A stretch of 64,000 nt of DNA from NCBI RefSeq assembly GCF_032444005.1, contig NC_091282.1, forward strand, positions 111,476,001 through 111,540,000, given 5' to 3'. The position numbers and the translations under genes were made by a program. A model generated the notes under the pieces. The model searched no databases and was not told the DNA's origin. It was given only the letters and a program-made list of their open reading frames with translations. Below, piece by piece: positions 24,894-49,341 of this stretch (positions are counted from its first letter, which is position 1; each line of letters opens with the position of its first letter). This stretch comes from Ranitomeya imitator. Lineage: Eukaryota.

Positions 24894-27800
24894 CCCCTTA
24901 GTGACAGAGCCAATTTGGTACTTAATGACCGAGCCAATTTTTACAATTCTGACCACTGTCACTTTATGAAGTTATAACTCTGGAACGCTTTAATGGATCC
25001 CTCTGATTCAGAGACCGTTTTTTCCTGACATATTGTACTTCATGTTAGTGGTAACATTTCTTTGATATTACTTGCGATTATTTAGGAAAATAACGGAAAT
25101 GTGGCGAAAAATTTTTAAATTTTGCAATTTTCAAACTTTGTATTTTTATGCCCTTAAATCAGAGAGATATGTCACAAAAAATAGTTAAAAAAAGTAACAT
25201 TTCCCACATGTCTACTTTACATCAGCACAATTTTAGAAACAACATTTTTTTTGTTAGGGAGTTAAAAGGGTTAAAAGTTGACCAGCAATTTCTCATTTTT
25301 ACAACACCATTTTTTTTTTAGGGACCACATCACATGTGAAGTCATTTTGAGGGGTCTATATGATAGAAAATAACCAAGTGTGACACCATTCTTAAAACTG
25401 CACCCCTCAAGGTGCTCAAAACCACATTCAAGAAGTTTATTAACCCTTTTCGTGCTTCACAGTAACTGAAACAATGTGGAAGGAAAAAATGAACATTTAA
25501 CTTTTTTTGCAAACATTTTACTTCAGAACCATTTTTTTTTTCACAAGTGTAAAAACAGAAATGTAACCATAAAATTTGTTGTGCAATTTCTCCTGAATAG
25601 TCCGATACTCTATATGTGGGGGTAAACCACTGTTTGGACGCACTGCAGAGCTTGGAAGAGAAGGAGTGCCATTTGACTTTTTCAATGCAGAATTGGCTGG
25701 AATTGAGATCTGATGCCATGTCACGTTTAGAGAGCCCCTGATGTGCCTAAATAATAGAAACCCCCCCCAAAGTGACACAATTTTGGATACTAGACCCCTT
25801 AAGGAACTTATCTAGATGTGTGGTGAGCACTTTAAAACCCCAGGTGCTTCACAGAAGTTTATAACGTAGAGCCGTAAAAATAAAAAAATCGCATTTTTTC
25901 TACAAAAATGATTTTTTTGCCCCAAAATTTTTATTTTCACAAGGGTAACAGGAGAAATTAGACAACATAAGTTGTTGTTCAATTTCTCCTGAGTACGTCG
26001 ATGCACCATATGTGGGGGTAAACCACTGTTTGGGCGCACCGCAGAGCTTGGAAGAGAAGGAGTGCCGTTTGACTTTTTCAATGCAGAATTGGCTGCAATT
26101 GAGATCGGACTCCATGTTGCGTTTGCAGAGCCCCTGATGTGCCTAAACAGTGGAAACCCCCCACAAGTGACACCATTTTGGAAACTAGACCCATTAAGGA
26201 ACTTATCTAGATATGTGGTGAGCACTTTGAACCTCCAAGTGCGTCACAGAAATTTATAAAGTAGAGCCATGAAAATAAAAAATCCTTTTTTTTCCCTCAA
26301 AAATTATTTTTTAGCCCGCAATTTTTTTATTTTCTCAAGGGTAACAGGAGACATTGGACCCCAAAATTTGTTGAACAGTTTGTCCTGAGTATGCTGATAC
26401 CCCATATGTGGGGGGGGCACTGTTTGGGCACACATCAGGGCTCGGAAGGGAAGGAGCGCCTCTTGGAATGCAGACTTTGATGGGATGGTCTGCGGGCGTC
26501 ATGTTGCATTTGCAGAGCTCCTGATGTACCTAAACAGTAGAAACCCCCCACAAGTGACCCCATTTTGGAAACTAGACCCCCCAAAGAGCTTATCTCGATG
26601 TGTGATGAGCACTGTGAATCCCCAACTGCTTCACAGAAGTTTATAATGTAGAGCCATGAAAATAACAAAAATTATATTTTTTCCACAAAAATGATGTTTT
26701 CACCCCCAAATTTTTTCTTTCTTAAGGGTAACAGGAGAAATTGGACCCCAAAATTTATTGTGCAATTTATGCTGAGTAGGCTGATACCCCATATATGGGG
26801 GGACCACTGTTTGGGCACATGGCAGAGCCGTTTTGGAATGCAGACTTTGATAGAATGGTCTGCGGGTGTTATGCTGTATTTGCAGAGCTCCTGATGTACC
26901 TAAACAGTAGAAACCCCCCACAAGTGACCCCATTTTAGAAACTAGACCCCCCAAAGAGCTTATCTCGATGTGTGATGAGCACTATGAACCCCCAACTGCT
27001 TCACAGAAGTTTATAATGTCCCCAACCTGTAGCTTGGGAGCCACATGTCGTGAGTCGTGAAAATAAAAAAACAAAAACATTTTCCGCAAAAATGATTTTT
27101 TAGCCCCCAAGTTTTTATTTTCACAAATGTAACAGGAGAAATTGGACCACAAAAGTTGTTGTCCAATTTATCCTGAGTACACTGATGCCCCATATGTGGG
27201 GGTAAACCACTGTTTGGGCGCACAGCAGAGCTCAGAAGGGAGGGAGCACCATTTGACTTTTTGAGAGCAAAATTGGCTGTCTTGTTTGGAGACCCCCTGA
27301 TGTACCTAAACAGTGAAACCCCCCCCCCAATTCTAACTCCAAACCTAACCCCAACGCACCCTTAACCCTAATCCCAACCCGATCCATAATCCTAATCACA
27401 ACCCTAACGATAATCACAACCCTAACCCCAAAACAACCCTAATCCCAACCCTAACCATAACCCTAATCAGAACCCTAAATCCAACACACCCCTAATTCTA
27501 ATCTCAACCATAACCTCACACCTAACCCTAATCCCAATACACCCCTAACCCTAATCCCAACCGTAACCTTAACCCTAATCTCAAACCTAACCCTAATTCC
27601 AAACGTAACCCTAATGCCAACCCTAACCCTAATACCAACCCTAATCCAAACCCTAACCCTAATCCCAACTCTAACCCTAACTTTAGCCGCAACCCTAGCC
27701 CTAACTTTAGTCCCAACCCTAACCCTAGCCCTAACCCTAGCCCTAACTTTAGCCCCAACCCCAACCATAACCCTAAACCTAGCCCTAACCCTAACTTTAG

Positions 27801-28628
27801 CCCCAACCCTAACCCTAGCCTTAACCCTAACCCTAACTTTAGCCCCAACCCTAACCCTAGCCCTAACCCTAACTCTAACCCTAGCTTTAGCCCAACTCCT
27901 CTAGCTGCTGGCCGGCAGATCATGGCAGGCGCACTGCGCATGCGCCCGCCATTTTCTTACTGGATGAAGAAGCCGGTAGCCAGAAGGGGACGCAGGAGGA
28001 CCCAGGGACACCGGTAAGTATAACAGGGGAATCCCCCTATTTCTCTGTCCTCTGATGTGCGATCGCTTTTGTTTTCCGATAAAACAGTAAACAGTTAATT
28101 ACCGGCGATCGCAAAACGGGGGTCGGTGAAAACCGACCCCGATCATGTTCTTTTTGGGTCTCGGCTACCCCCGGCAGCCAAGACCCCAAAGATCTTCCGG
28201 GTGCCAGCCGGCGGGCGCACTGCACATGCTCCCGCCATTTTTTGGCCAGAACAAGATGGCGGCACCCATCGGCAGCCATGAGGAGCACCGGAGGAGACAG
28301 GTGAGTATCTGGGGGGCGATCCGGGACCCCATTTCTCTGTCCTCTGATGTGTGATGACATCAAAGGACAGAGAAATTAAATGGGAAATCGCGTTTTTGGG
28401 GTTTTTTTGCGACCGCCGGTAAACGGTTAATTACCTGCGATCGCAACCCGGGGGTCGGTAAAAATAACCAGAATCATGTTCTCTGGGGTCCCTGCTACCG
28501 AGACCCCAGAAAAAATCCGACTCTGGGGGCGCTATTCACTTTTTACACAGCGCCATTAATTAACGGCGCTGTGGTTTAAATACCCTTAACTGCCGCCGTT
28601 AAAAGGCATATCGGCGGTCGCTAAGGGG
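24894..28628 (+). mobile_element. Complete piggyBac-like non-autonomous element (3735 bp)
   Basis: TTAA TSD (24890-24893 and 28629-28632); TIR CCCCTTAG(T/C)GAC; five ~370-405 bp subrepeats plus a telomere-like array; no transposase. Superfamily inferred from TTAA plus CCC termini. Confidence 0.9.
27330..27897 (+). repeat. Interstitial telomere-like array (CCCTAA with CCCTAG, CCCCAA, CTTTAG variants)
   Basis: Direct reading; source of the low-complexity LGLG/RVRV/LTLT ORFs. Confidence 0.95.
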
Positions 28629-28766: not shown

Positions 28767-28813
28767 ATTTGCACTGATGAGGGGCAAATACCCAGAAACA
28801 TGTGCCTACAAAT
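28767..28813 (+). ncRNA. Degenerate minimal type I hammerhead ribozyme
   Basis: ATTTGCA-CTGATGA-GGGG-CAAATA-CCCA-GAAA-CATGTG-CC-TACAAAT: intact CUGAUGA and GAAA core, stems I-III recognisable, cleavage triplet GCC instead of GUC. Confidence 0.65.
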
Positions 28814-33029: not shown

Positions 33030-33398
33030 GGCTATGTGCACACGTTCAGGATTTCTTGCAGAAAATTCCTGAGAATTCCGGACATTTTCTGCAAGAAATC
33101 CGCAAGAAAACCGCATGTGTTTTTGCCGCGGTTTTGCAGCGTTTTTGCCGCGGTTTTTTCCGGACACCTCCCAATGCATTTTGGAGTGGAAATCCGCAAA
33201 AAAAACGCAAAAAGATAGAGCATGTCCGGATTTTGTGCGGTATGCGTTTTTTTTTGCGGAAAAAAACGCATCATGTGCACAAAACATGCGGAATTCATTC
33301 TAAATGATGGGATGCTTATTATATGCGGTTTTTTTTGCGGTTTTATAGCGTTTTTATCGGGAAAAACCGCGAAAAAACCGCAACGTGTGAACACAGCC
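33030..33398. mobile_element. Harbinger-like MITE
   Basis: GGCT.TGT.CACACGTT TIR with TAA TSD. Confidence 0.88.
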
Positions 33399-33804
33399 TA
33401 ATAAAGATATTTCTGGAGTAGAACGTTTAGTGTCTTGGATATTTGGAATTTTAGCGATTTTGCAACATTGTGCGGTATGACTGACGAAGACTGCACGGAC
33501 TACAGAGTGGTGCACATACATAATTTTGAACTGTCAGGAATGGAGAGGCACAGGAAAAATGAAAAACAATGTGTGACATTTGTGTCTGAACACACTCCTA
33601 TTGCCTCTGCCCTGTCCCTATATGGCACTGCACTTAACCATGTACTGTATACCTAAGCTACTGCAGTGCCATGCACATGCGGTATGTGACATAGCTAATC
33701 AGAAGAACTATACTATATTTCTAATTTGAGGTATTTGCTAATATTATTTGTGACAACACAGCATTTAATCTTAATTATCCAGATGTCTATTTTCAGTAAG
33801 CCAG

Positions 33805-35996
33805 CACACTGCATCTCTCTTATACCAGGTCCTACGCTGAGTCTATGTTTGGATGTGCAGGTCAGGTTTTTGAAATGTATTCTCTAGCCTTCTGATCGTG
33901 CACTCCGCCTCCTAGCCACAGGTGTTTTAATTACAGCAGGTCCAGTACCCCTCCACAGAGAGAGAGAATTTTAGTCTAGGAAGAGGTTTCACATGTACCC
34001 ATTCAGATGGAGACGTTTATTCTCAGCGAGGTAAGGCAAGCGTAGGACCTGGTATAAGAGAGATGCCATAAAGGGGCTACCATGTACACATAAAATTGGC
34101 CATTTTTATGCGCTAAACGCTCTCATTTTTCATATTTCTAGTGCAGTAATGCAGTTCAAATTTCGTATTTCAAGTTTGTATGTTCTAGCGCTGCAGTGTG
34201 CTGCCTTATTTACTTAACTATATACGAGTTGGCGACTCTAGGTTCAGCACCTGTTCACACTGAGTCTATGTTTGGATGTGCAGGTCAGGTTTTTGAAATG
34301 TATTCTCTAGCCTTCTGATCGTGCACTCCGCCTCCTAGCCACAGGTGTTTTAATTACAGCAGGTCCAGTACCCCTCCACAGAGAGAGAGAATTTTAGTCT
34401 AGGAAGAGGTTTCACATGTACCCATTCAGATGGAGACGTTTATTCTCAGCGAGGTAAGGCAAGCGTAGGACCTGGTATAAGAGAGATGCCGTAAAGGGGC
34501 TACCATGTACACATAAAATTGGCCATTTTTATGCGCTAAACGCTCTCATTTTTCATATTTCTAGTGCAGTAATGCAGTTCAAATTTCGTATTTCAAGTTT
34601 GTATGTTCTAGCGCTGCAGTGTGCTGCCTTATTTACTTAACTATATACGAGTTGGCGACTCTAGGTTCAGCACCTGTTCACACTGAGTCTATGTTTGGAT
34701 GTGCAGGTCAGGTTTTTGAAATGTATTCTCTAGCCTTCTGATCGTGCACTCCGCCTCCTAGCCACAGGTGTTTTAATTACAGCAGGTCCAGTACCCCTCC
34801 ACAGAGAGAGAGAATTTTAGTCTAGGAAGAGGTTTCACATGTACCCATTCAGATGGAGACGTTTATTCTCAGCGAGGTAAGGCAAGCGTAGGACCTGGTA
34901 TAAGAGAGATGCCGTAAAGGGGCTACCAGGTACACATAAAATTGGCCATTTTTATGCGCTAAACGCTCTCATTTTTCATATTTCTAGTGCAGTAATGCAG
35001 TTCAAATTTCGTATTTCAAGTTTGTATGTTCTAGCGCTGCAGTGTACTGCCTTATTTACTTAACTATATACGAGTTGGCGACTCTAGGTTCAGCACCTGT
35101 TCACACTGAGTCTATGTTTGGATGTGCAGGTCAGGTTTTTGAAATGTATTCTCTAGCCTTCTGATCGTGCACTCCGCCTCCTAGCCACAGGTGTTTTAAT
35201 TACAGCAGGTCTAGTACCCCTCCACAGAGAGAGAGAATTTTAGTCTAGGAAGAGGTTTCACATGTACCCATTCAGATGGAGACGTTTATTCTCAGCGAGG
35301 TAAGGCAAGCGAAGTACCTGGTATAAGAGAGATGCCGTAAAGGGGCTACCAGGTACACATAAAATTGGCCATTTTTATGCGCTAAACGCTCTCATTTTTC
35401 ATATTTCTAGTGCAGTAATGCAGTTCAAATTTCGTATTTCAAGTTTGTATGTTCTAGCGCTGCAGTGTGCTGCCTTATTTACTTAACTATATACGAGTTG
35501 GCGACTCTAGGTTCAGCACCTGTTCACGCTGAGTCTATGTTTGGATGTGCAGGTCAGGTTTTTGAAATGTATTCTCTAGCCTTCTGATCGTGCACTCCGC
35601 CTCCTAGCCACAGGTGTTTTAATTACAGCAGGTCCAGTACCCCTCCACAGAGAGAGAGAATTTTAGTCTAGGAAGAGGTTTCACATGTACCCATTCAGAT
35701 GGAGACGTTTATTCTCAGCTAGGTAAGGCAAGCGTAGGACCTAGTATAAGAGAGATGCCGTAAAGGGGCTACCAGGTACACATAAAATTGGCCATTTTTA
35801 TGCGCTAAACGCTCTAATTTTTCATATTTCTAGTGCAGTAATGCAGTTCAAATTTCGTATTTCAAGTTTGTATGTTCTAGCGCTGCAGTGTGCTGCCTTA
35901 TTTACCTAACTATATACGAGTTGGCGACTCTAGGTTCAGCACCTGTTCACACTGAGTCTATGTTTGGATGTGCAGGTCAGGTTTTTGAAATGTATT
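33805..35996. repeat. Tandem array of a 423-bp non-coding unit (5 units plus ~43 bp) with an inverted head
   Basis: GAGTCTATG recurs at 33839, 34262, 34685, 35108, 35531 and 35954; units differ by only a few substitutions. Confidence 0.97.
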
Positions 35997-36045
35997 TTTA
36001 GTAAGCCAGGAGGCATAGACTATTATCTTTATGTTGACTCTTCTT

Positions 36046-39000
36046 TTATTATTATTATTATTCATTTTTATAGCACCATTTATTCCATGGCACTTTACAT
36101 GTGAATGGGGCAAATATAGACAAGTACAATAAACATGAGTAAAACAAGGCACACACAAGTACAGGAGGAGAGAGGACCCTGCCCGCGAGGGCTCACAGTC
36201 TACAGGGGATGGGTGAGGATACACTAGGTGAGGGTAGAGCTGATCATGTGGCGGTTCAGTATACTAGGGATCACTTCAGGTTGTAGGCTTGTCGGAAGAG
36301 GTGGGTCTTCAGGTTCCTTTTGAAGGTTTCCGTGGTAGGTGAGAGCCTGATGTGTTGGGGTAGAGAGTTCCAGAGTATAGGGGAAGCACGGGAGAAGTCT
36401 TGGATGCGGTTGTGGGAGGAAGAGATGAGAGAGGAGTAAACAAGGAGATCATGAGATGATCGAAGGTTGCGTGTAGGTAGGTAACGGGAGACCATGTCAC
36501 AGATGTATGGATGAGTCAGATTGTGAATGGCTTTGTATGTCATTGTTAGTGTTTAGCCTCTGGGCAATAGGAAGCCAGTGAAGGGCCTGGCAGAGAGGAG
36601 AGGCTGGGGAGTAATGGGGAGACAGGTGGATTAGTCGGGCAGCAGAGTTTAGGATGGATTGGATTGGTGGGAGATGATAAGGGCATGTACTGGTGTTTTT
36701 GTGGTTTCAAGGTCAAGGAATGCACGGCTCTGAGAAATGTTTTTGAGCTGGAATCAGCAAGAGGAGGCAAGGGCTTGGATATGTGGCTTGAAAGAGAGGG
36801 TAGAGTCAAGGATCACCCCAAGGTACCGAGCGTGCGGGACCGGGGAAAGTGAGCAGCCATTGACATTGATGAATAGGTCGGGTGGAGGGGTAGAATGAGG
36901 TGGGAAAAAGATGATGAATTCTGTTTTGTCCATGTTCAGTTTTAGAAAACGAGCAGAAAAGAAGGATGAAATAGCAGACAGACATTGTGGGATTTTGGTC
37001 AGTAAGGAAGTGAGGTCGGGTCCAGATAGGTAGATCTGCGTGTCATCAGCGTAGAGATGATATTGTAAACCGTGGAATTCTATGAGTTGTCCAAGGCCGA
37101 AGGTGTAGATGGAGAAGAGTAGGGGTCCTAGAACTGAGCCTTGGGGAACACCGACAGGGGGCGAGATGAGGAGGTGGTGTGGGAGAGGGAGACACTGAAT
37201 GTCCGGTCTGTTAGATATGATGAGATCCAGGATAGGGCCAAGTCTGTGATGCCAAGAGATGAGAGAATCTGTAACAGGAGGGAGTGGTCCACAGTGTCAA
37301 AGGCAGAAGACAGGTCCAGGAGGAGGAGGACAGAGTAGTGTCGCTTGCTCTTGGCGGTTAGTAGGTCATTGGTCACTTTAGTTAGGGCAGTTTCAGTTGA
37401 GTGATGTGTTCGGAAGCCAGATTGTAACCGGTCAAAGAGGGAGCAGGACGAGAGATGGGAGGACAGTTCAAGATGGACATGCTGTTCCAGTAGTTTTGAG
37501 GCATAAGGGAGAAGGGATATCGGGCGATAGCTGGACACAGAGGATGGGTCGAGGGAGGGTTTTTTGAGAATATGTGTGATTGATACGTGTTTGAAGGATG
37601 AGGGGAACAGGGCCGGCTCCAGGTTTTTGAGGGCCCCGGGCGAAAGAGTCTCAGTGGGCCCCCCTTTAACACATACCACGATTCATGATCGCATATAAAC
37701 ACAGCCATGTAGTATATAGCACAACCCACGTAGTATATAGCACAGCCACGTAGAATATAACACAGCCATGTAGTATATAACAGCCCACATAGCATATAAC
37801 TCAGCCACGTAGTATATAGCACAGCCCATGTATCATATAACAGCCCATATAGTATATAACACGGCCCACATAGTTTATAGAACAGCCATGTAGTATACAG
37901 CACAGCCCACACAGTAGTATATAGCACAGCCTACACAGTGGTATATAGCACAGCCCACACAGTAGTATATAGCACAGCCCACACAGTAGTATACAGCACT
38001 GGCCACACAGTAGTATACAGCACTGCCCACATAGTAGTATATAGTACTGCCCACATAGTATATAGCAGCCCACGTAGTATATAACAGCCCACATAGTATA
38101 TAACACTGCCCACGTAGTATATAACACTGCCCACGTAGTATATAGCAGCCCATGTAGTATATAGCAGCCAACGTAGTATATAGCAGCCCACGTAGCATAT
38201 AGCAGACCATGTAGTATATAGCAGCCCACGTAGTATATATAAGCCTATGTAGTATATAGCAGCCCACGTAGCATATAGCAGCCCACGTAGCATATAGCAG
38301 CCCATGTAGTATATAGCAGCCCATGTAGTATATAGCAGCCCACGTAGCATATAGCAGCCCACGTAGCATATAGCAGCCCACGTAGCATATAGCAGCCCAC
38401 GTAGCATATAGCAGCCCACATAGTATATAGCAGCCCACTCATTCTCTGGGCACTGGATGGTCGGAAGTCACTCTGCTCTGCGTATCCATGGCAACGGATT
38501 GTGGGCGGCTGTTCAGCAGCTGCAGTGCAAAAGTCCCAGAGCTCCGGGCTGCCTCCTCTCTTCTAGCATGCACCTCTGACCGCAGATTCCTGCCTCAGGG
38601 GCCGCATGCGGGCAGCCTGCACCTAACGCCGGCCCTGAATGGGCCACCCTGTATCGCCAGGGCCCCGGCACTTGCCCGGGTACGCCGGGTGCTGACGCCG
38701 GCCCTGGAGGGGAAGACACCATTTGTAAGTGAGAGGTTGAAGAGTTGTGTTAGGGTTGGGATGAAGACTTTTGCGAGGTTAGGGATGAGGTGGGACGCGA
38801 GCTGGTCAAGGGTGCAAGTGGTGAGATGTGATCTTGATAGAAGGATGGAGAGCTGATCGTCTGTCATGGTGGAGAAGCTGGCTTTGGAACCAGGCTGAGA
38901 AGTCAAGAGGAGGGGCATTAGGGGCTGCGGGCCATAGCTTTGTCTGATGTTATCTATCTTCTGCTTAAAGAAAGAGGCAAATTATTCAGCTAAAATGAGA

Positions 39001-41145: not shown

Positions 41146-41398
41146 CAGGGCCGGCTCCAGGTTTTTGAGGGCCCCGGGCGAAAGAGTCTCAGTGGGCCCC
41201 CCCTTTAACACATACCACGATTCATGATCGCATATAAACACAGCCATGTAGTATATAGCACAGCCCACATAGTATATAGCACAGCCACGTAGCATATAAC
41301 ACAGCCATGTAGTATATAACAGCCCACGTAGCATATAACACAGCCACGTAGTATATAGTACAGCCCATCTATATATATAATTGTCTAAGGGTTTTTCC

Positions 41399-41429
<31 letters not shown>

Positions 41430-42670
41430 CTGGAAATCCCGGCTCTCTGATTGGTCGAGGCCGCCAGGCCTCGACCAATCAGAGACCGGCACAGCATCGA
41501 CGTAGAAATCCCGCGTCTCTGATTGGTCGAGGCCGCCAGGCCTCGACCAATCAGCAGCGGGCACAGCGACGATGATGTCATAATGGTTGCCATGGCGACG
41601 ATGATGTCATAAAGGTTGCCTCGACCAATCAGCGATGGGCACAGTCTGCCGCGAATTCTGGAATCATCATTGTCCATATACTACGGGGACATGCATATTC
41701 TAGAATACCCGATGCGTTAGAATCGGGCCACAATCTAGTGTATCATATAACAGCCCATATAGTATATAACAAGGCCCACGTAGTTTATAGAACAGCCATG
41801 TAGTATACAGCACAGCCCACATAGTAGTTTACAACACTGCCCACACAGTAGTATATAGCACAGCCCACACAGTGGTATATAGCACAGCCCACACAGTAGT
41901 ATACAGCACTGGCCACACAGTAGTATACAGCACTGCCCACATAGTATATAGCAGCCCACGTAGTATATAACACTGCCCACGTAGTATATAACACTGCCCA
42001 CATAGTATATAACACTGCCCACGTAGTATATAGCAGCCAACGTAGTATATAGCAGCCCACGTAGCATATAGCAGACCATGTAGTATATAGCAGCCCACGT
42101 AGTATATAGCAGCCTATGTAGTATATAGCAGACCACGTAGCATATAGCAGCCCACGTACCATATAGCAGCCCACGTAGCATATAGCAGACCATGTAGTAT
42201 ATAGCAGCCCACGTAGTATATAGCAGCCTATGTAGTATATAGCAGACCACGTAGCATATAGCAGCCCACGTACCATATAGCAGCCCACGTAGTATATAGC
42301 AGCCCACGTAGTATATAGCAGCCCACGTAGCATATAGCAGCCCACGTAGCATATAGCAGCCAACGTAGCATATTGCAGCCCACATAGTATATAGCAGCCC
42401 ACTCATTCTCTGGGCACTGGACGGTCGGAAGTCACTCTGCTCTGCGTATCCATGGCGACAGATTGTGGGCGGCTATCCAGCAGCTGCAGTGCAAAAGTCC
42501 CAGAGCTCCGTGCTGCCTCCTCACTTCTAGCATGCACCTCGGACTGCAGATTCCTGCCTCAGGGGCCGCATGCGGGCAGCCTGCACCTAACGCCGGCCCT
42601 GAATGGGCCCCCCTGTATCGCCAGGGCCCCGGCACTTGCCCGGGTACGCCGGGTGCTGACGCCGGCCCTG
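41146..42670. mobile_element. hAT-type MITE, same family as 37608-38706
   Basis: TIR CAGGGCCGGC; 8-bp TSD TCTGGAAC. Confidence 0.93.
41368..41738 (+). mobile_element. Non-autonomous Helitron (371 bp)
   Basis: 5' TC, 3' CTAG, subterminal hairpin CCCGAT/ATCGGG (41708-41727); inserted between A and T with no TSD. Confidence 0.88.
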
Positions 42671-46574: not shown

Positions 46575-49341
46575 ATGTATACTAATGCCAGAAGCCTCGC
46601 CAACAAAATGGACGAATTAGAACTAATGTTGTTGGAGCATAATTATGACATCGTGGGGATATCTGAAAAGTGGCTGGATGAGAGCCATGACTGGGCTGTT
46701 AACTTGCAGGGCTATAGCCTGTTCAGAAATGACCGCACAGATAAGCGAGGGGGTGGGGTGTCTCTGTATGTAAAATTGTCCTTAAAACCCATCCTGCATA
46801 ATAATATAAATGAAAATGTAGAATCCCTGTGGATGGAGATAAGGGGAGGGGCAAAAAATAATAAATTACTGATAGGGGTTTGTTATAAATCTCCAAAAAT
46901 AATGGAAGCAATGGAGAATATCCTCGTAAAGCAAATAGATGAAGCTGCGACTCAAGGAGAAGTCATTATTATGGGGGACTTCAACTACCCTGAAATAGAT
47001 TGGGGAACAGAAACCTGCAGTTCCAGCAAAGGTAATCGGTTTTTGACAACTATGAGAGACAATTACCTTTCACAACTGGTTCAGGACCCAACAAGAAGGG
47101 GGGCACTGCTAGACCTAATATTAACCAACAGGCCAGACCGCAGATCAAATATAAGGGTTGGGGGTCACTTGGGGAATAGTGATCACAAAATAATAAGTTT
47201 TCATGTATCCTTTAAAAAGATGTGTAATAGAGGGGTTACAAGGACACTAAACTTCAGGAGGGCAAATTTCCAACGGATGAGAGAGGATCTTGGTGCAATT
47301 AACTGGGACGATATCCTGAGACACAAAAATACACAAAGAAAATGGGAGACATTTATTAGCATCCTGGATAGGACCTGTGCACAGTATATACCGTATGGGA
47401 ATAAACATACTAGAAATAGGAGGAAACCAATATGGCTAAATAGAGCTGTAAGGGGCCCAATAAGTGACAAAAAGAAAGCATTTAGAGAATTAAAGGAAGT
47501 AAGTAGTGAGGAGGCATTAAATAAATACAAAAAATTAAATAAATTCTGTAAAAAGCAAATCAAGGCAGCAAAGATTGAGACAAAGAGACTCATTGCCAGA
47601 GAGAGTAAAAATAATCCTAAAATATTCTTTAACTACATAAATAGTAAGAAACTAAAAAATGATAGTGTTGGCCCCCTTAAAAATAGTCTGGGTGAAATGG
47701 TGGATGAGGATGAGGAAAAAGCCAATATGCTAAATGACTTTTTTTCATCAGTATTTACACAAGAAAATCCCATGGCAGACAAAATGACTAGTGATAAAAA
47801 TTCCCAATTAAATGTCACCTGCTTAACCCAGCAGGAAGTGCGGCGGCGTCTAAAGATCACTGAAATTGACAAATCTCCGGGCCCGGATGGGATATACCCT
47901 TGAGTACTGCAGGAATTAAGTACAGTCATTGATAGACCATTATTTTTAATCTTTAAAGACTCCATAATAACAGGGTCTGTACCACAGGACTGGCGTATAG
48001 CAAATGTGGTGCCAATATTCAAAAAGGGGACAAAACCGAACTCGGAAATTATAGGCCAGTAAGCTTAACCTCTACTGTGGGTAAAATCCTGGAGGGCATG
48101 CTAAGGGATGCTATACTGGAGTATCTGAAGAGGAATAACCTCATGACCCAGTATCAGCACGGGTTTACTAGGGACCGTTCATGTCAGACTAATCTCATCA
48201 GGTTCTATGAAGAGGTAAGTTCCGGATTGGACCAAGGAAACCCAGTGGATGTAGTGTATATGGACTTTTCAAAATCTTTTGATACGGTGCCACACAAAAG
48301 GTTGATACATAAAATGAGAATAATGGGGATAGGGGAAAATATGTGCAAGTGGGTTGAGAGCTGGCTCAGGGATAGGAAACAAAGGGTGGTTATTAATGGA
48401 GCACACTCGGACTGGGTAGCGGTTAGCAGTGGGGTATCACAGGGGTCAGTATTGGGCCCTCTTCTTTTTAACATATTTATTAATGACCTTGTAGGGGGCA
48501 TTCAGAGTAGAATTTCAATATTTGCAGATGACACTAAACTCTGCAGGGTAATCAATACAGAGGAGGACAATTTTATATTACAGGATGATTTATGTAAACT
48601 AGAAGCTTGGGCTGATAAATGACAAATGAGCTTTAATGGGGATAAATGTAAGGTCATGCACTTGGGTAGAAGTAATAAGATGTATAATTATGTGCTTAAT
48701 TCTAAAACTCTGGGCAAAATCGTCAATGAAAAAGACCTGGGTGTATGGGTGGATGACAAACTCATATTCAGTGGCCAGTGTCAGGCAGCTGCTACAAAGG
48801 CAAATAAAATAATGGGATGCATTAAAAGAGTCATATATGCTCATGAAGAGAACATAATTTTACCTCTAAACAAGTCACTAGTTCGACCACACTTAGAATA
48901 CTGTGCACAGTTCTGGTCTCCGGTGTATAAGAAAGACATAGCTGAACTAGAGCAGGTGCAGAGAAGAGCGACCAAGGTTATTAGAGGACTGGGGGTCTGC
49001 AATACCAAGATAGGTTATTACACTTGGGGCTATTTAGTTTGGAAAACCGAAGACTAAGGGGTGATCTTATTTTAATGTATAAATATATGAGGGGACAGTA
49101 CAAAGACCTTTCTGATGATCTTTTTAATCATAGACCTGAAACAGGGACAAGGGGGCACCCTCTGCGTTTGGAGGAAAAAAGGTTTAAGCATAATAACAGA
49201 CGCGGATTCTTTACTGTAAGAGCAGAGAGACTATGGAACTCTCTACCGTATAATGTTGTAATGAGTGATTCATTACTTAAATTTAAGAGGTGACTGGATA
49301 CCTTTCTGGAAAAGTATAATGTTACAGGGTATATATACTAG
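46575..49341 (+). pseudogene. CR1 ORF2: APE endonuclease plus reverse transcriptase
   Basis: YTNARSL, MGDFNYP, LLDLILTN, SDH; SGVSQGSVLGP, FADDTKL; C-terminal FFTVR..WN.LP. Confidence 0.95.

Follow-up and report, generated by a model that had tools for sequence, protein, structure and literature searches.

The 2.2-kb block of head-to-tail 423-bp non-coding repeats on NC_091282.1 of Ranitomeya imitator is the product of one insertion event and not a locally grown satellite, because the 17-bp repeat at its borders is a real target-site duplication (TSD) and uninterrupted copies of the host sequence exist. The geometry of the joints fits twin priming on a single-stranded multimeric template. From this geometry we propose, with moderate confidence, that the block arose by target-primed reverse transcription (TPRT) of a linear multimeric transcript, carried out by an enzyme that moves retrozymes and that probably belongs to a Penelope-like element (PLE). 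The main rival, and a real one, is templated repair at the DNA level.

TRF places one array at 33837–35996, with a period of 423, 5.1 copies, 99% matches and 0% indels, in agreement with the five exact-period units described in the first-pass annotation of this DNA. The majority sequence of the five full units serves here purely as a coordinate frame, with no claim that it represents a functional copy. In this frame, the block and its surroundings read as follows within the 64-kb window (the whole stretch of DNA that was analysed).

33621–33787, unstranded: left flank, a high-copy host repeat (word depth in run X1) and the insertion target of the array
33788–33804, unstranded: left TSD copy, 17 bp, TATTTTCAGTAAGCCAG, present once in uninterrupted host copies
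33805–33813, reverse strand: inverted snippet A (CACACTGCA), reverse complement of unit 356–364
33811–33838, reverse strand: inverted snippet B, exact reverse complement of unit 203–230
33837–35951, forward strand: five full 423-bp units, head to tail, without indels
35952–35996, forward strand: partial sixth unit, positions 1–45, with its final 4 nt (TATT) common to the TSD
35993–36009, unstranded: right TSD copy, 17 bp, TATTTTTAGTAAGCCAG, which departs from the left copy by a single C/T change
36010–36500, unstranded: right flank, where host sequence resumes, with a very high-copy repeat from about 36082

Each of the five full units differs from the majority sequence at 1–4 positions (n = 5), and none contains an open reading frame longer than 40 aa, which bears out the earlier description of the repeat as non-coding. 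At unit position 247, units 1–2 carry T and units 3–5 carry G (CTACCATG / CTACCAGG), so the division into two groups of units that had been noticed at first reading is present as a single-base difference. The left 17-mer is separated from unit 1 by 34 nt that match the antisense strand of the unit and fall into two pieces, both of which had been recognized before. The longer, snippet B, is a 28/28 reverse complement of unit 203–230 and extends to 31 nt with one mismatch; the shorter, snippet A, corresponds to unit 356–364. Either the 34-nt head or the 45-nt partial sixth unit can be read as a 30–40-bp tail of the PLE type or as a simple phase offset.

The unit belongs to a very abundant family. 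Contigs matching the unit region number 34,062 in X1, 8,567 of them at least 99% alike, 23,888 in X3, and 1,125 in a small run with a third species label. Summed word depth on the unit is 10^5–10^6 as against 14–17 on unique flank, a figure that is not a copy number; by this crude depth ratio, the family comprises tens of thousands of units or more, roughly 10^4–10^5 per genome. The tens of thousands of contigs indicate that the family is dispersed, and the contig comparison lists no common end position inside the unit. The family is recently amplified and is also present under two other species labels. In the rest of the 64-kb window, sensitive blastn and nhmmer searches with a unit dimer found no other copies or distant relatives of the unit and no partner element, and an exact 28-mer of the unit had 0 matches in JGI metagenome contigs. 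The mean divergence of the units from the majority sequence is 0.5%, which at anuran substitution rates (PMC12822217) would date the insertion to a few million years ago, provided that all units started out identical.

Evidence for a single insertion comes from contigs of four public runs, which we compared with 33300–36500. Joints that pass directly from 33787 to 35993, skipping 2205 bp (the insert plus one 17-mer), occur in both X1 (organism A) and X3 (organism B), and in 84 X3 contigs the match ends at 33804 and continues with the sequence of 36010 onward. Contigs from two species labels thus contain uninterrupted host copies, which may be paralogous copies or the other allele, with a single 17-mer. 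Because the 17-mer is single in the empty state, its two copies around the array are a true TSD. The two copies, which the first-pass annotation had described as near-identical, agree at 16 of 17 positions exactly at both array borders, and this is far beyond chance. The proposal of a single insertion with a TSD is therefore upheld by empty-site joints from two runs. A single-copy 17-mer at the empty site had been set in advance as the test of that proposal and was found, at sites that may be paralogous and not orthologous.

The host sequence around the insertion is itself repetitive. Summed word depth in X1 is 44,000–100,000 on the left flank, compared with 14–17 on the unique stretch at 33407–33620. 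The flanks at 33621–33834 and 36082–36500 are very high-copy in all four runs, and the points 33748, 36159 and 36242, at which many contigs part from this sequence, suggest that older elements are nested here. Elsewhere in the window we observed a degenerate interstitial telomere-type repeat, (CTAACC)n, at 27333–27883 (∼92 copies, 64% matches), and minisatellites of 19–24-bp units (GTAGTATATAGCAGCCCAC-type) at 37701–38438 and 41230–42402, which lie ∼3.5 kb apart in apparently opposite contexts. A run of 164 N at 1361–1524 marks an assembly gap or masked sequence.

All four joints of the insert are readable, and microhomology is present at 4/4 of them. At the right joint, the array stops at unit position 45, and its last TATT is also the first four bases of the TSD. 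At the left joint, the antisense match of snippet A extends, at 7/8 positions, over the final eight TSD bases (TAAGCCAG vs TAAGGCAG; unit 365–372), with a chance probability of about 4e-4. GCA is common to snippets A and B. Snippet B overlaps unit 1 by CT, or by ACGCT if the G variant found at the unit 4/5 border is assumed. The new strands, top at the left and bottom at the right, are both complementary to the same (+) polarity of the unit, which is what a single-stranded template requires. In template coordinates, the second primer site (unit 365–372) lies 51 nt upstream of the position at which the direct array stops (position 1). The unit positions at which the two target 3' ends lie, 45 and about 372, are unrelated, and no 3' recognition signal is evident; priming therefore looks driven by microhomology and not by a signal. 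The first-nick site on the bottom strand, 5'-GAAAATA/GACATC-3' (slash at the nick), is not T-rich, and the insert end, which reads ..GAAATGTATT, has no poly(A) or A-rich 3' end.

These joints can be accommodated by the following sequence of events. The two target strands would have been nicked 17 bp apart and the insert copied into this staggered break. The template would have been a single plus-sense strand with no fewer than 5.6 tandem units, and a transcript reading through an array already present is its most likely source. After a bottom-strand nick between 33787 and 33788, the exposed 3' end (..AATA) would pair with UAUU at unit 42–45, and the first cDNA would run back across 5.1 units to unit position 1. 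A top-strand nick after 33804 would expose a second 3' end (TAAGCCAG), which would pair at 7/8 positions with unit 365–372 in the next unit upstream on the same template. The second cDNA would copy positions 364 to 361, jump by way of the GCA microhomology to 230, and continue to 203. The two cDNA 3' ends would then anneal on CT (or ACGCT) and be filled in, so that the head is inverted, the array direct and 17 bp of target duplicated. Both ends would thus be microhomology-primed, with neither poly(A) nor a fixed 3' end. The enzyme would most likely be the reverse transcriptase plus endonuclease that also moves hammerhead retrozymes, and retrozyme mobilization is attributed to PLEs in the literature. 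The RNA template, the identity of the enzyme and the order of the steps are inferred, the first of these from the geometry of the junctions and from analogy.

This geometry is that of the twin priming described for L1, in which both target 3' ends are extended on one RNA, so that the 5' portion of the insert is inverted and the 3' portion direct; microhomology occurs at its two ends and where the inversion is joined, a short stretch is deleted at that joint, and the TSD measures ∼15 bp (PMC2912911). The frog insert resembles these products in its inverted and direct parts, its joint microhomology and its TSD, and the 51-nt gap corresponds to the small deletion at the inversion joint. It is unlike them in lacking poly(A) and a T-rich nick site, and in having a tandem non-coding repeat as template. 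The 17-bp TSD is within the range of TPRT.

The preference for an RNA template is based on the single-polarity rule, the clean 17-bp TSD, the dynamics of amplification and the context in the literature. Several observations count against the TPRT reading. The head is only ∼34 nt long and in two pieces, whereas in described PLEs the entire pLTR is inverted; break repair by DNA polymerases likewise leaves microhomology and short templated snippets; the 3' ends lie at different unit positions; the TSD is longer than those of rotifer PLEs; and neither a PLE RT–GIY-YIG gene nor any unit-like sequence is found elsewhere in the window. Contigs of unspecified strand, ends and level lie on the unit in X13, a run guessed to be RNA; the ratio of unit to flank in X13 is ∼10-fold below that in DNA with this species label, a hint that the run is not plain DNA.

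The DNA-level rival holds that a staggered break was repaired by copying satellite DNA, either from an extrachromosomal circle or from one strand displaced out of an array. Copying would proceed through microhomology-mediated template switching of the polymerase-theta or MMBIR type, and fill-in of 17-nt overhangs would create the duplication. This scheme accounts for the microhomologies and the two-piece head as well as the RNA reading does: every joint has 2–8 nt of microhomology, and the two snippets, separated by a skip of 125–130 nt, look like templated filler DNA. It is also consistent with the lack of poly(A), a fixed 3' end, a ribozyme or a partner reverse transcriptase in the window, and with its abundance the unit could often serve as a template for repair. 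Satellite DNA can disperse through extrachromosomal circles and microhomology-mediated repair, leaving short blocks at new sites with microhomology joints, but neither a regular 17-bp TSD nor a single-polarity rule is expected of that process. With duplex DNA as the template, the same polarity at both ends is expected half the time, and break repair does not usually leave a clean 17-bp TSD. We regard repair from DNA as the less likely reading, although it has to be taken seriously, and retain reverse transcription of a linear multimer as the preferred reading.

If an RNA was copied, the enzyme could instead have been that of a LINE, of the L1 or CR1/L2 type, acting in trans on a satellite transcript to give a tailless retrocopy by internal priming. 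Twin priming and a TSD peak at 14–16 bp are L1 hallmarks (PMC2912911), and the window contains a broken LINE with APE endonuclease and reverse transcriptase at 46575–49054 on the forward strand (Exo_endo_phos at 46575–47900, RVT_1 at 48077–48619), so such enzymes exist in this genome. However, the bottom-strand nick site is not the T-rich site of L1, there is no poly(A) or microsatellite tail, and no segment of the unit resembles the window LINE. Action of a LINE in trans is thus quite improbable, and an ordinary L1-type TPRT product was rejected on the lack of both an A-rich 3' end and a T-rich first-nick site. Among 30 ORFs of the window, Pfam identified just the APE-type LINE and a DDE fragment, and no GIY-YIG domain.

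Other classes of mobile element can be set aside. The termini, CACACTGCA.. and ..AATGTATT, are not inverted repeats, and a 17-bp TSD compares with 2–11 bp across the superfamilies of DNA transposons, which excludes a DNA transposon or MITE. Helitrons are expected to leave no TSD, to insert between A and T and to have 5'-TC and CTRR-3' ends; here a 17-bp TSD is present and the ends are of another kind. Tyrosine-recombinase elements, for which no TSD is expected, are likewise rejected on the 17-bp TSD.

We next consider whether the unit encodes a ribozyme. Rfam has no family that matches at E ≤ 10 within the array, or at the gathering score anywhere in the window. Rfam is also silent, at E ≤ 5, on a hammerhead-like core near 28775–28800, so its negatives are weak for minimal or decayed frog hammerheads. 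Because the Rfam result is weak by itself, a direct motif search was added: CTGANGA is absent from both strands of the array, and no core appears even when one mismatch is allowed together with a stem II of at least 3 bp and GAAA. The absence of this core noted in the first-pass annotation is confirmed. Both strands of the monomer fold no better than shuffled sequences (z +0.72 and +0.41).

The window does contain sequences of other kinds that recall hammerheads. The core at 28775–28800 (CTGATGAG, with a GGGG..CCC stem followed by AGAAAC) lies inside a fold-back element. Two older tandem arrays, at 153–1203 and 25531–27016, share a related unit of ∼390 bp (2.7 and 3.8 copies, ∼80% identity), the consensus of which has a CTGATG...GAAAC-like stretch; these may be decayed hammerhead retrozyme arrays, with no Rfam hammerhead at E ≤ 5.

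The shape of the RNA is a separate issue. The original claim was of a multimeric or circular RNA; the multimeric part stands, since the twin-priming geometry fits a linear multimer more simply, and the circular part appears less likely. In the circular version, a monomeric 423-nt circle would be reverse-transcribed by rolling circle, as in the retrozyme life cycle, after circularization by an unrecognized self-cleaving motif or by host enzymes. Arrays with no fixed start or end phase are what such copying would produce, and known retrozymes do form circles (PMC7229834). Yet copying of one circle does not predict the T/G split at position 247, the monomer folds no better than shuffles on either strand, and the unit contains no known ribozyme; a second primer on a 423-nt circle would moreover block the first cDNA, which needs five passes. 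We consider rolling-circle copying doubtful, and hold it to be just as doubtful that the unit is a retrozyme-type mobile RNA that either processes and circularizes itself by an undescribed class of self-cleaving motif or has no need of a ribozyme. The 247 split, the ordinary folding and the five-pass block, none of them decisive, favor a linear read-through transcript of a slightly heterogeneous array.

The least credible alternative is that slippage or unequal crossing-over built up an ordinary satellite at this site and that the 17-mers on either side of it are a coincidence: the perfect tandem with its exact period would suit this origin, but the empty-site joints, at which host copies carry the 17-mer once and lack the whole block, rule it out, and the inverted unit sequence at the head and the dispersal of the unit in huge numbers also speak against it.

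Among known systems, the insert is most usefully compared with the non-LTR retrozymes of animals, which in Amphibia average 316 bp, mostly form arrays of no more than 7 units and are tied to PLE pLTRs (Li, Clavereau & Pollet 2026, bioRxiv 10.64898/2026.07.22.740005). Like them (PMC7229834; bioRxiv 10.64898/2026.07.22.740005), it consists of non-coding units of a few hundred bases in a short head-to-tail array, with a TSD longer than 4 bp, low GC and a very high copy number in an amphibian. An array of 5.1 × 423 bp lies within the range of non-coding units of ∼150–1000 bp in short head-to-tail runs by which retrozyme arrays are recognized, and the dispersed insertions with TSDs that characterize retrozymes have a counterpart in the 17-bp TSD and the empty-site joints, with dispersal judged from contigs. 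Unlike the animal non-LTR retrozymes, which have a type I hammerhead in each unit, the 423-bp unit has no hammerhead on either strand. Retrozymes are documented to be expressed as circular RNAs (Cervera & de la Pena 2020, PMC7229834); the 423-nt monomer has no unusual folding stability.

Penelope-like elements offer the second comparison. They insert as tandem plus inverted copies, and clades that lack a ribozyme (Naiad, Chlamys) exist (Craig et al. 2021, PMC8557442); in non-autonomous Chlamys elements, an insertion can consist of several copies arranged head to tail (PMC8557442; PMC3846280). The frog insert shares with PLE insertions the partial and multiple tandem copies, an inverted 5' piece beside direct copies, a TSD and microhomology at the joints. 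The PLE-type layout of tandem copies with an inverted, 5'-truncated copy upstream is thus present, with a head (33805–33838) that is short and in two pieces, and the Penelope-style or retrozyme-like arrangement proposed at first reading agrees with the tandem array, the inverted head and the TSD. The array differs from PLEs in having no RT–GIY-YIG ORF and no demonstrated similarity to a pLTR or a PLE 3' end, and in an inverted piece of ∼34 nt in two fragments in place of a whole inverted pLTR. Its TSD of 17 bp also exceeds the 8–10 bp of PLE TSDs in rotifers (Arkhipova et al. 2013, PMC3846280). PLE clades without a ribozyme have so far been described outside the vertebrates, whereas the 423-bp array is from a vertebrate. 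By analogy with these two systems, we class the element as a putative ribozyme-free, retrozyme-like tandem element that would function like a retrozyme or a non-autonomous PLE, but without the hammerhead that defines the former.

This classification, if correct, has consequences for how such elements are sought. Animal retrozymes have been found and defined by their hammerhead, so ribozyme-free families with the same mobility are invisible to such screens. If the 423-bp family uses the retrozyme machinery, the hammerhead is not needed for mobilization, and a sizeable share of the 'satellite' DNA in large frog genomes would be retroelement cargo. If the 423-nt unit processes itself by an undescribed motif, or moves without any ribozyme, the hammerhead would be dispensable for such mobility in vertebrates. 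The insertion is also young enough for all four of its joints to have stayed readable, which makes it a rare natural record of assembly; as we read it, that record would be one of microhomology priming at both target ends, with no fixed 3' end, on a linear multimer template.
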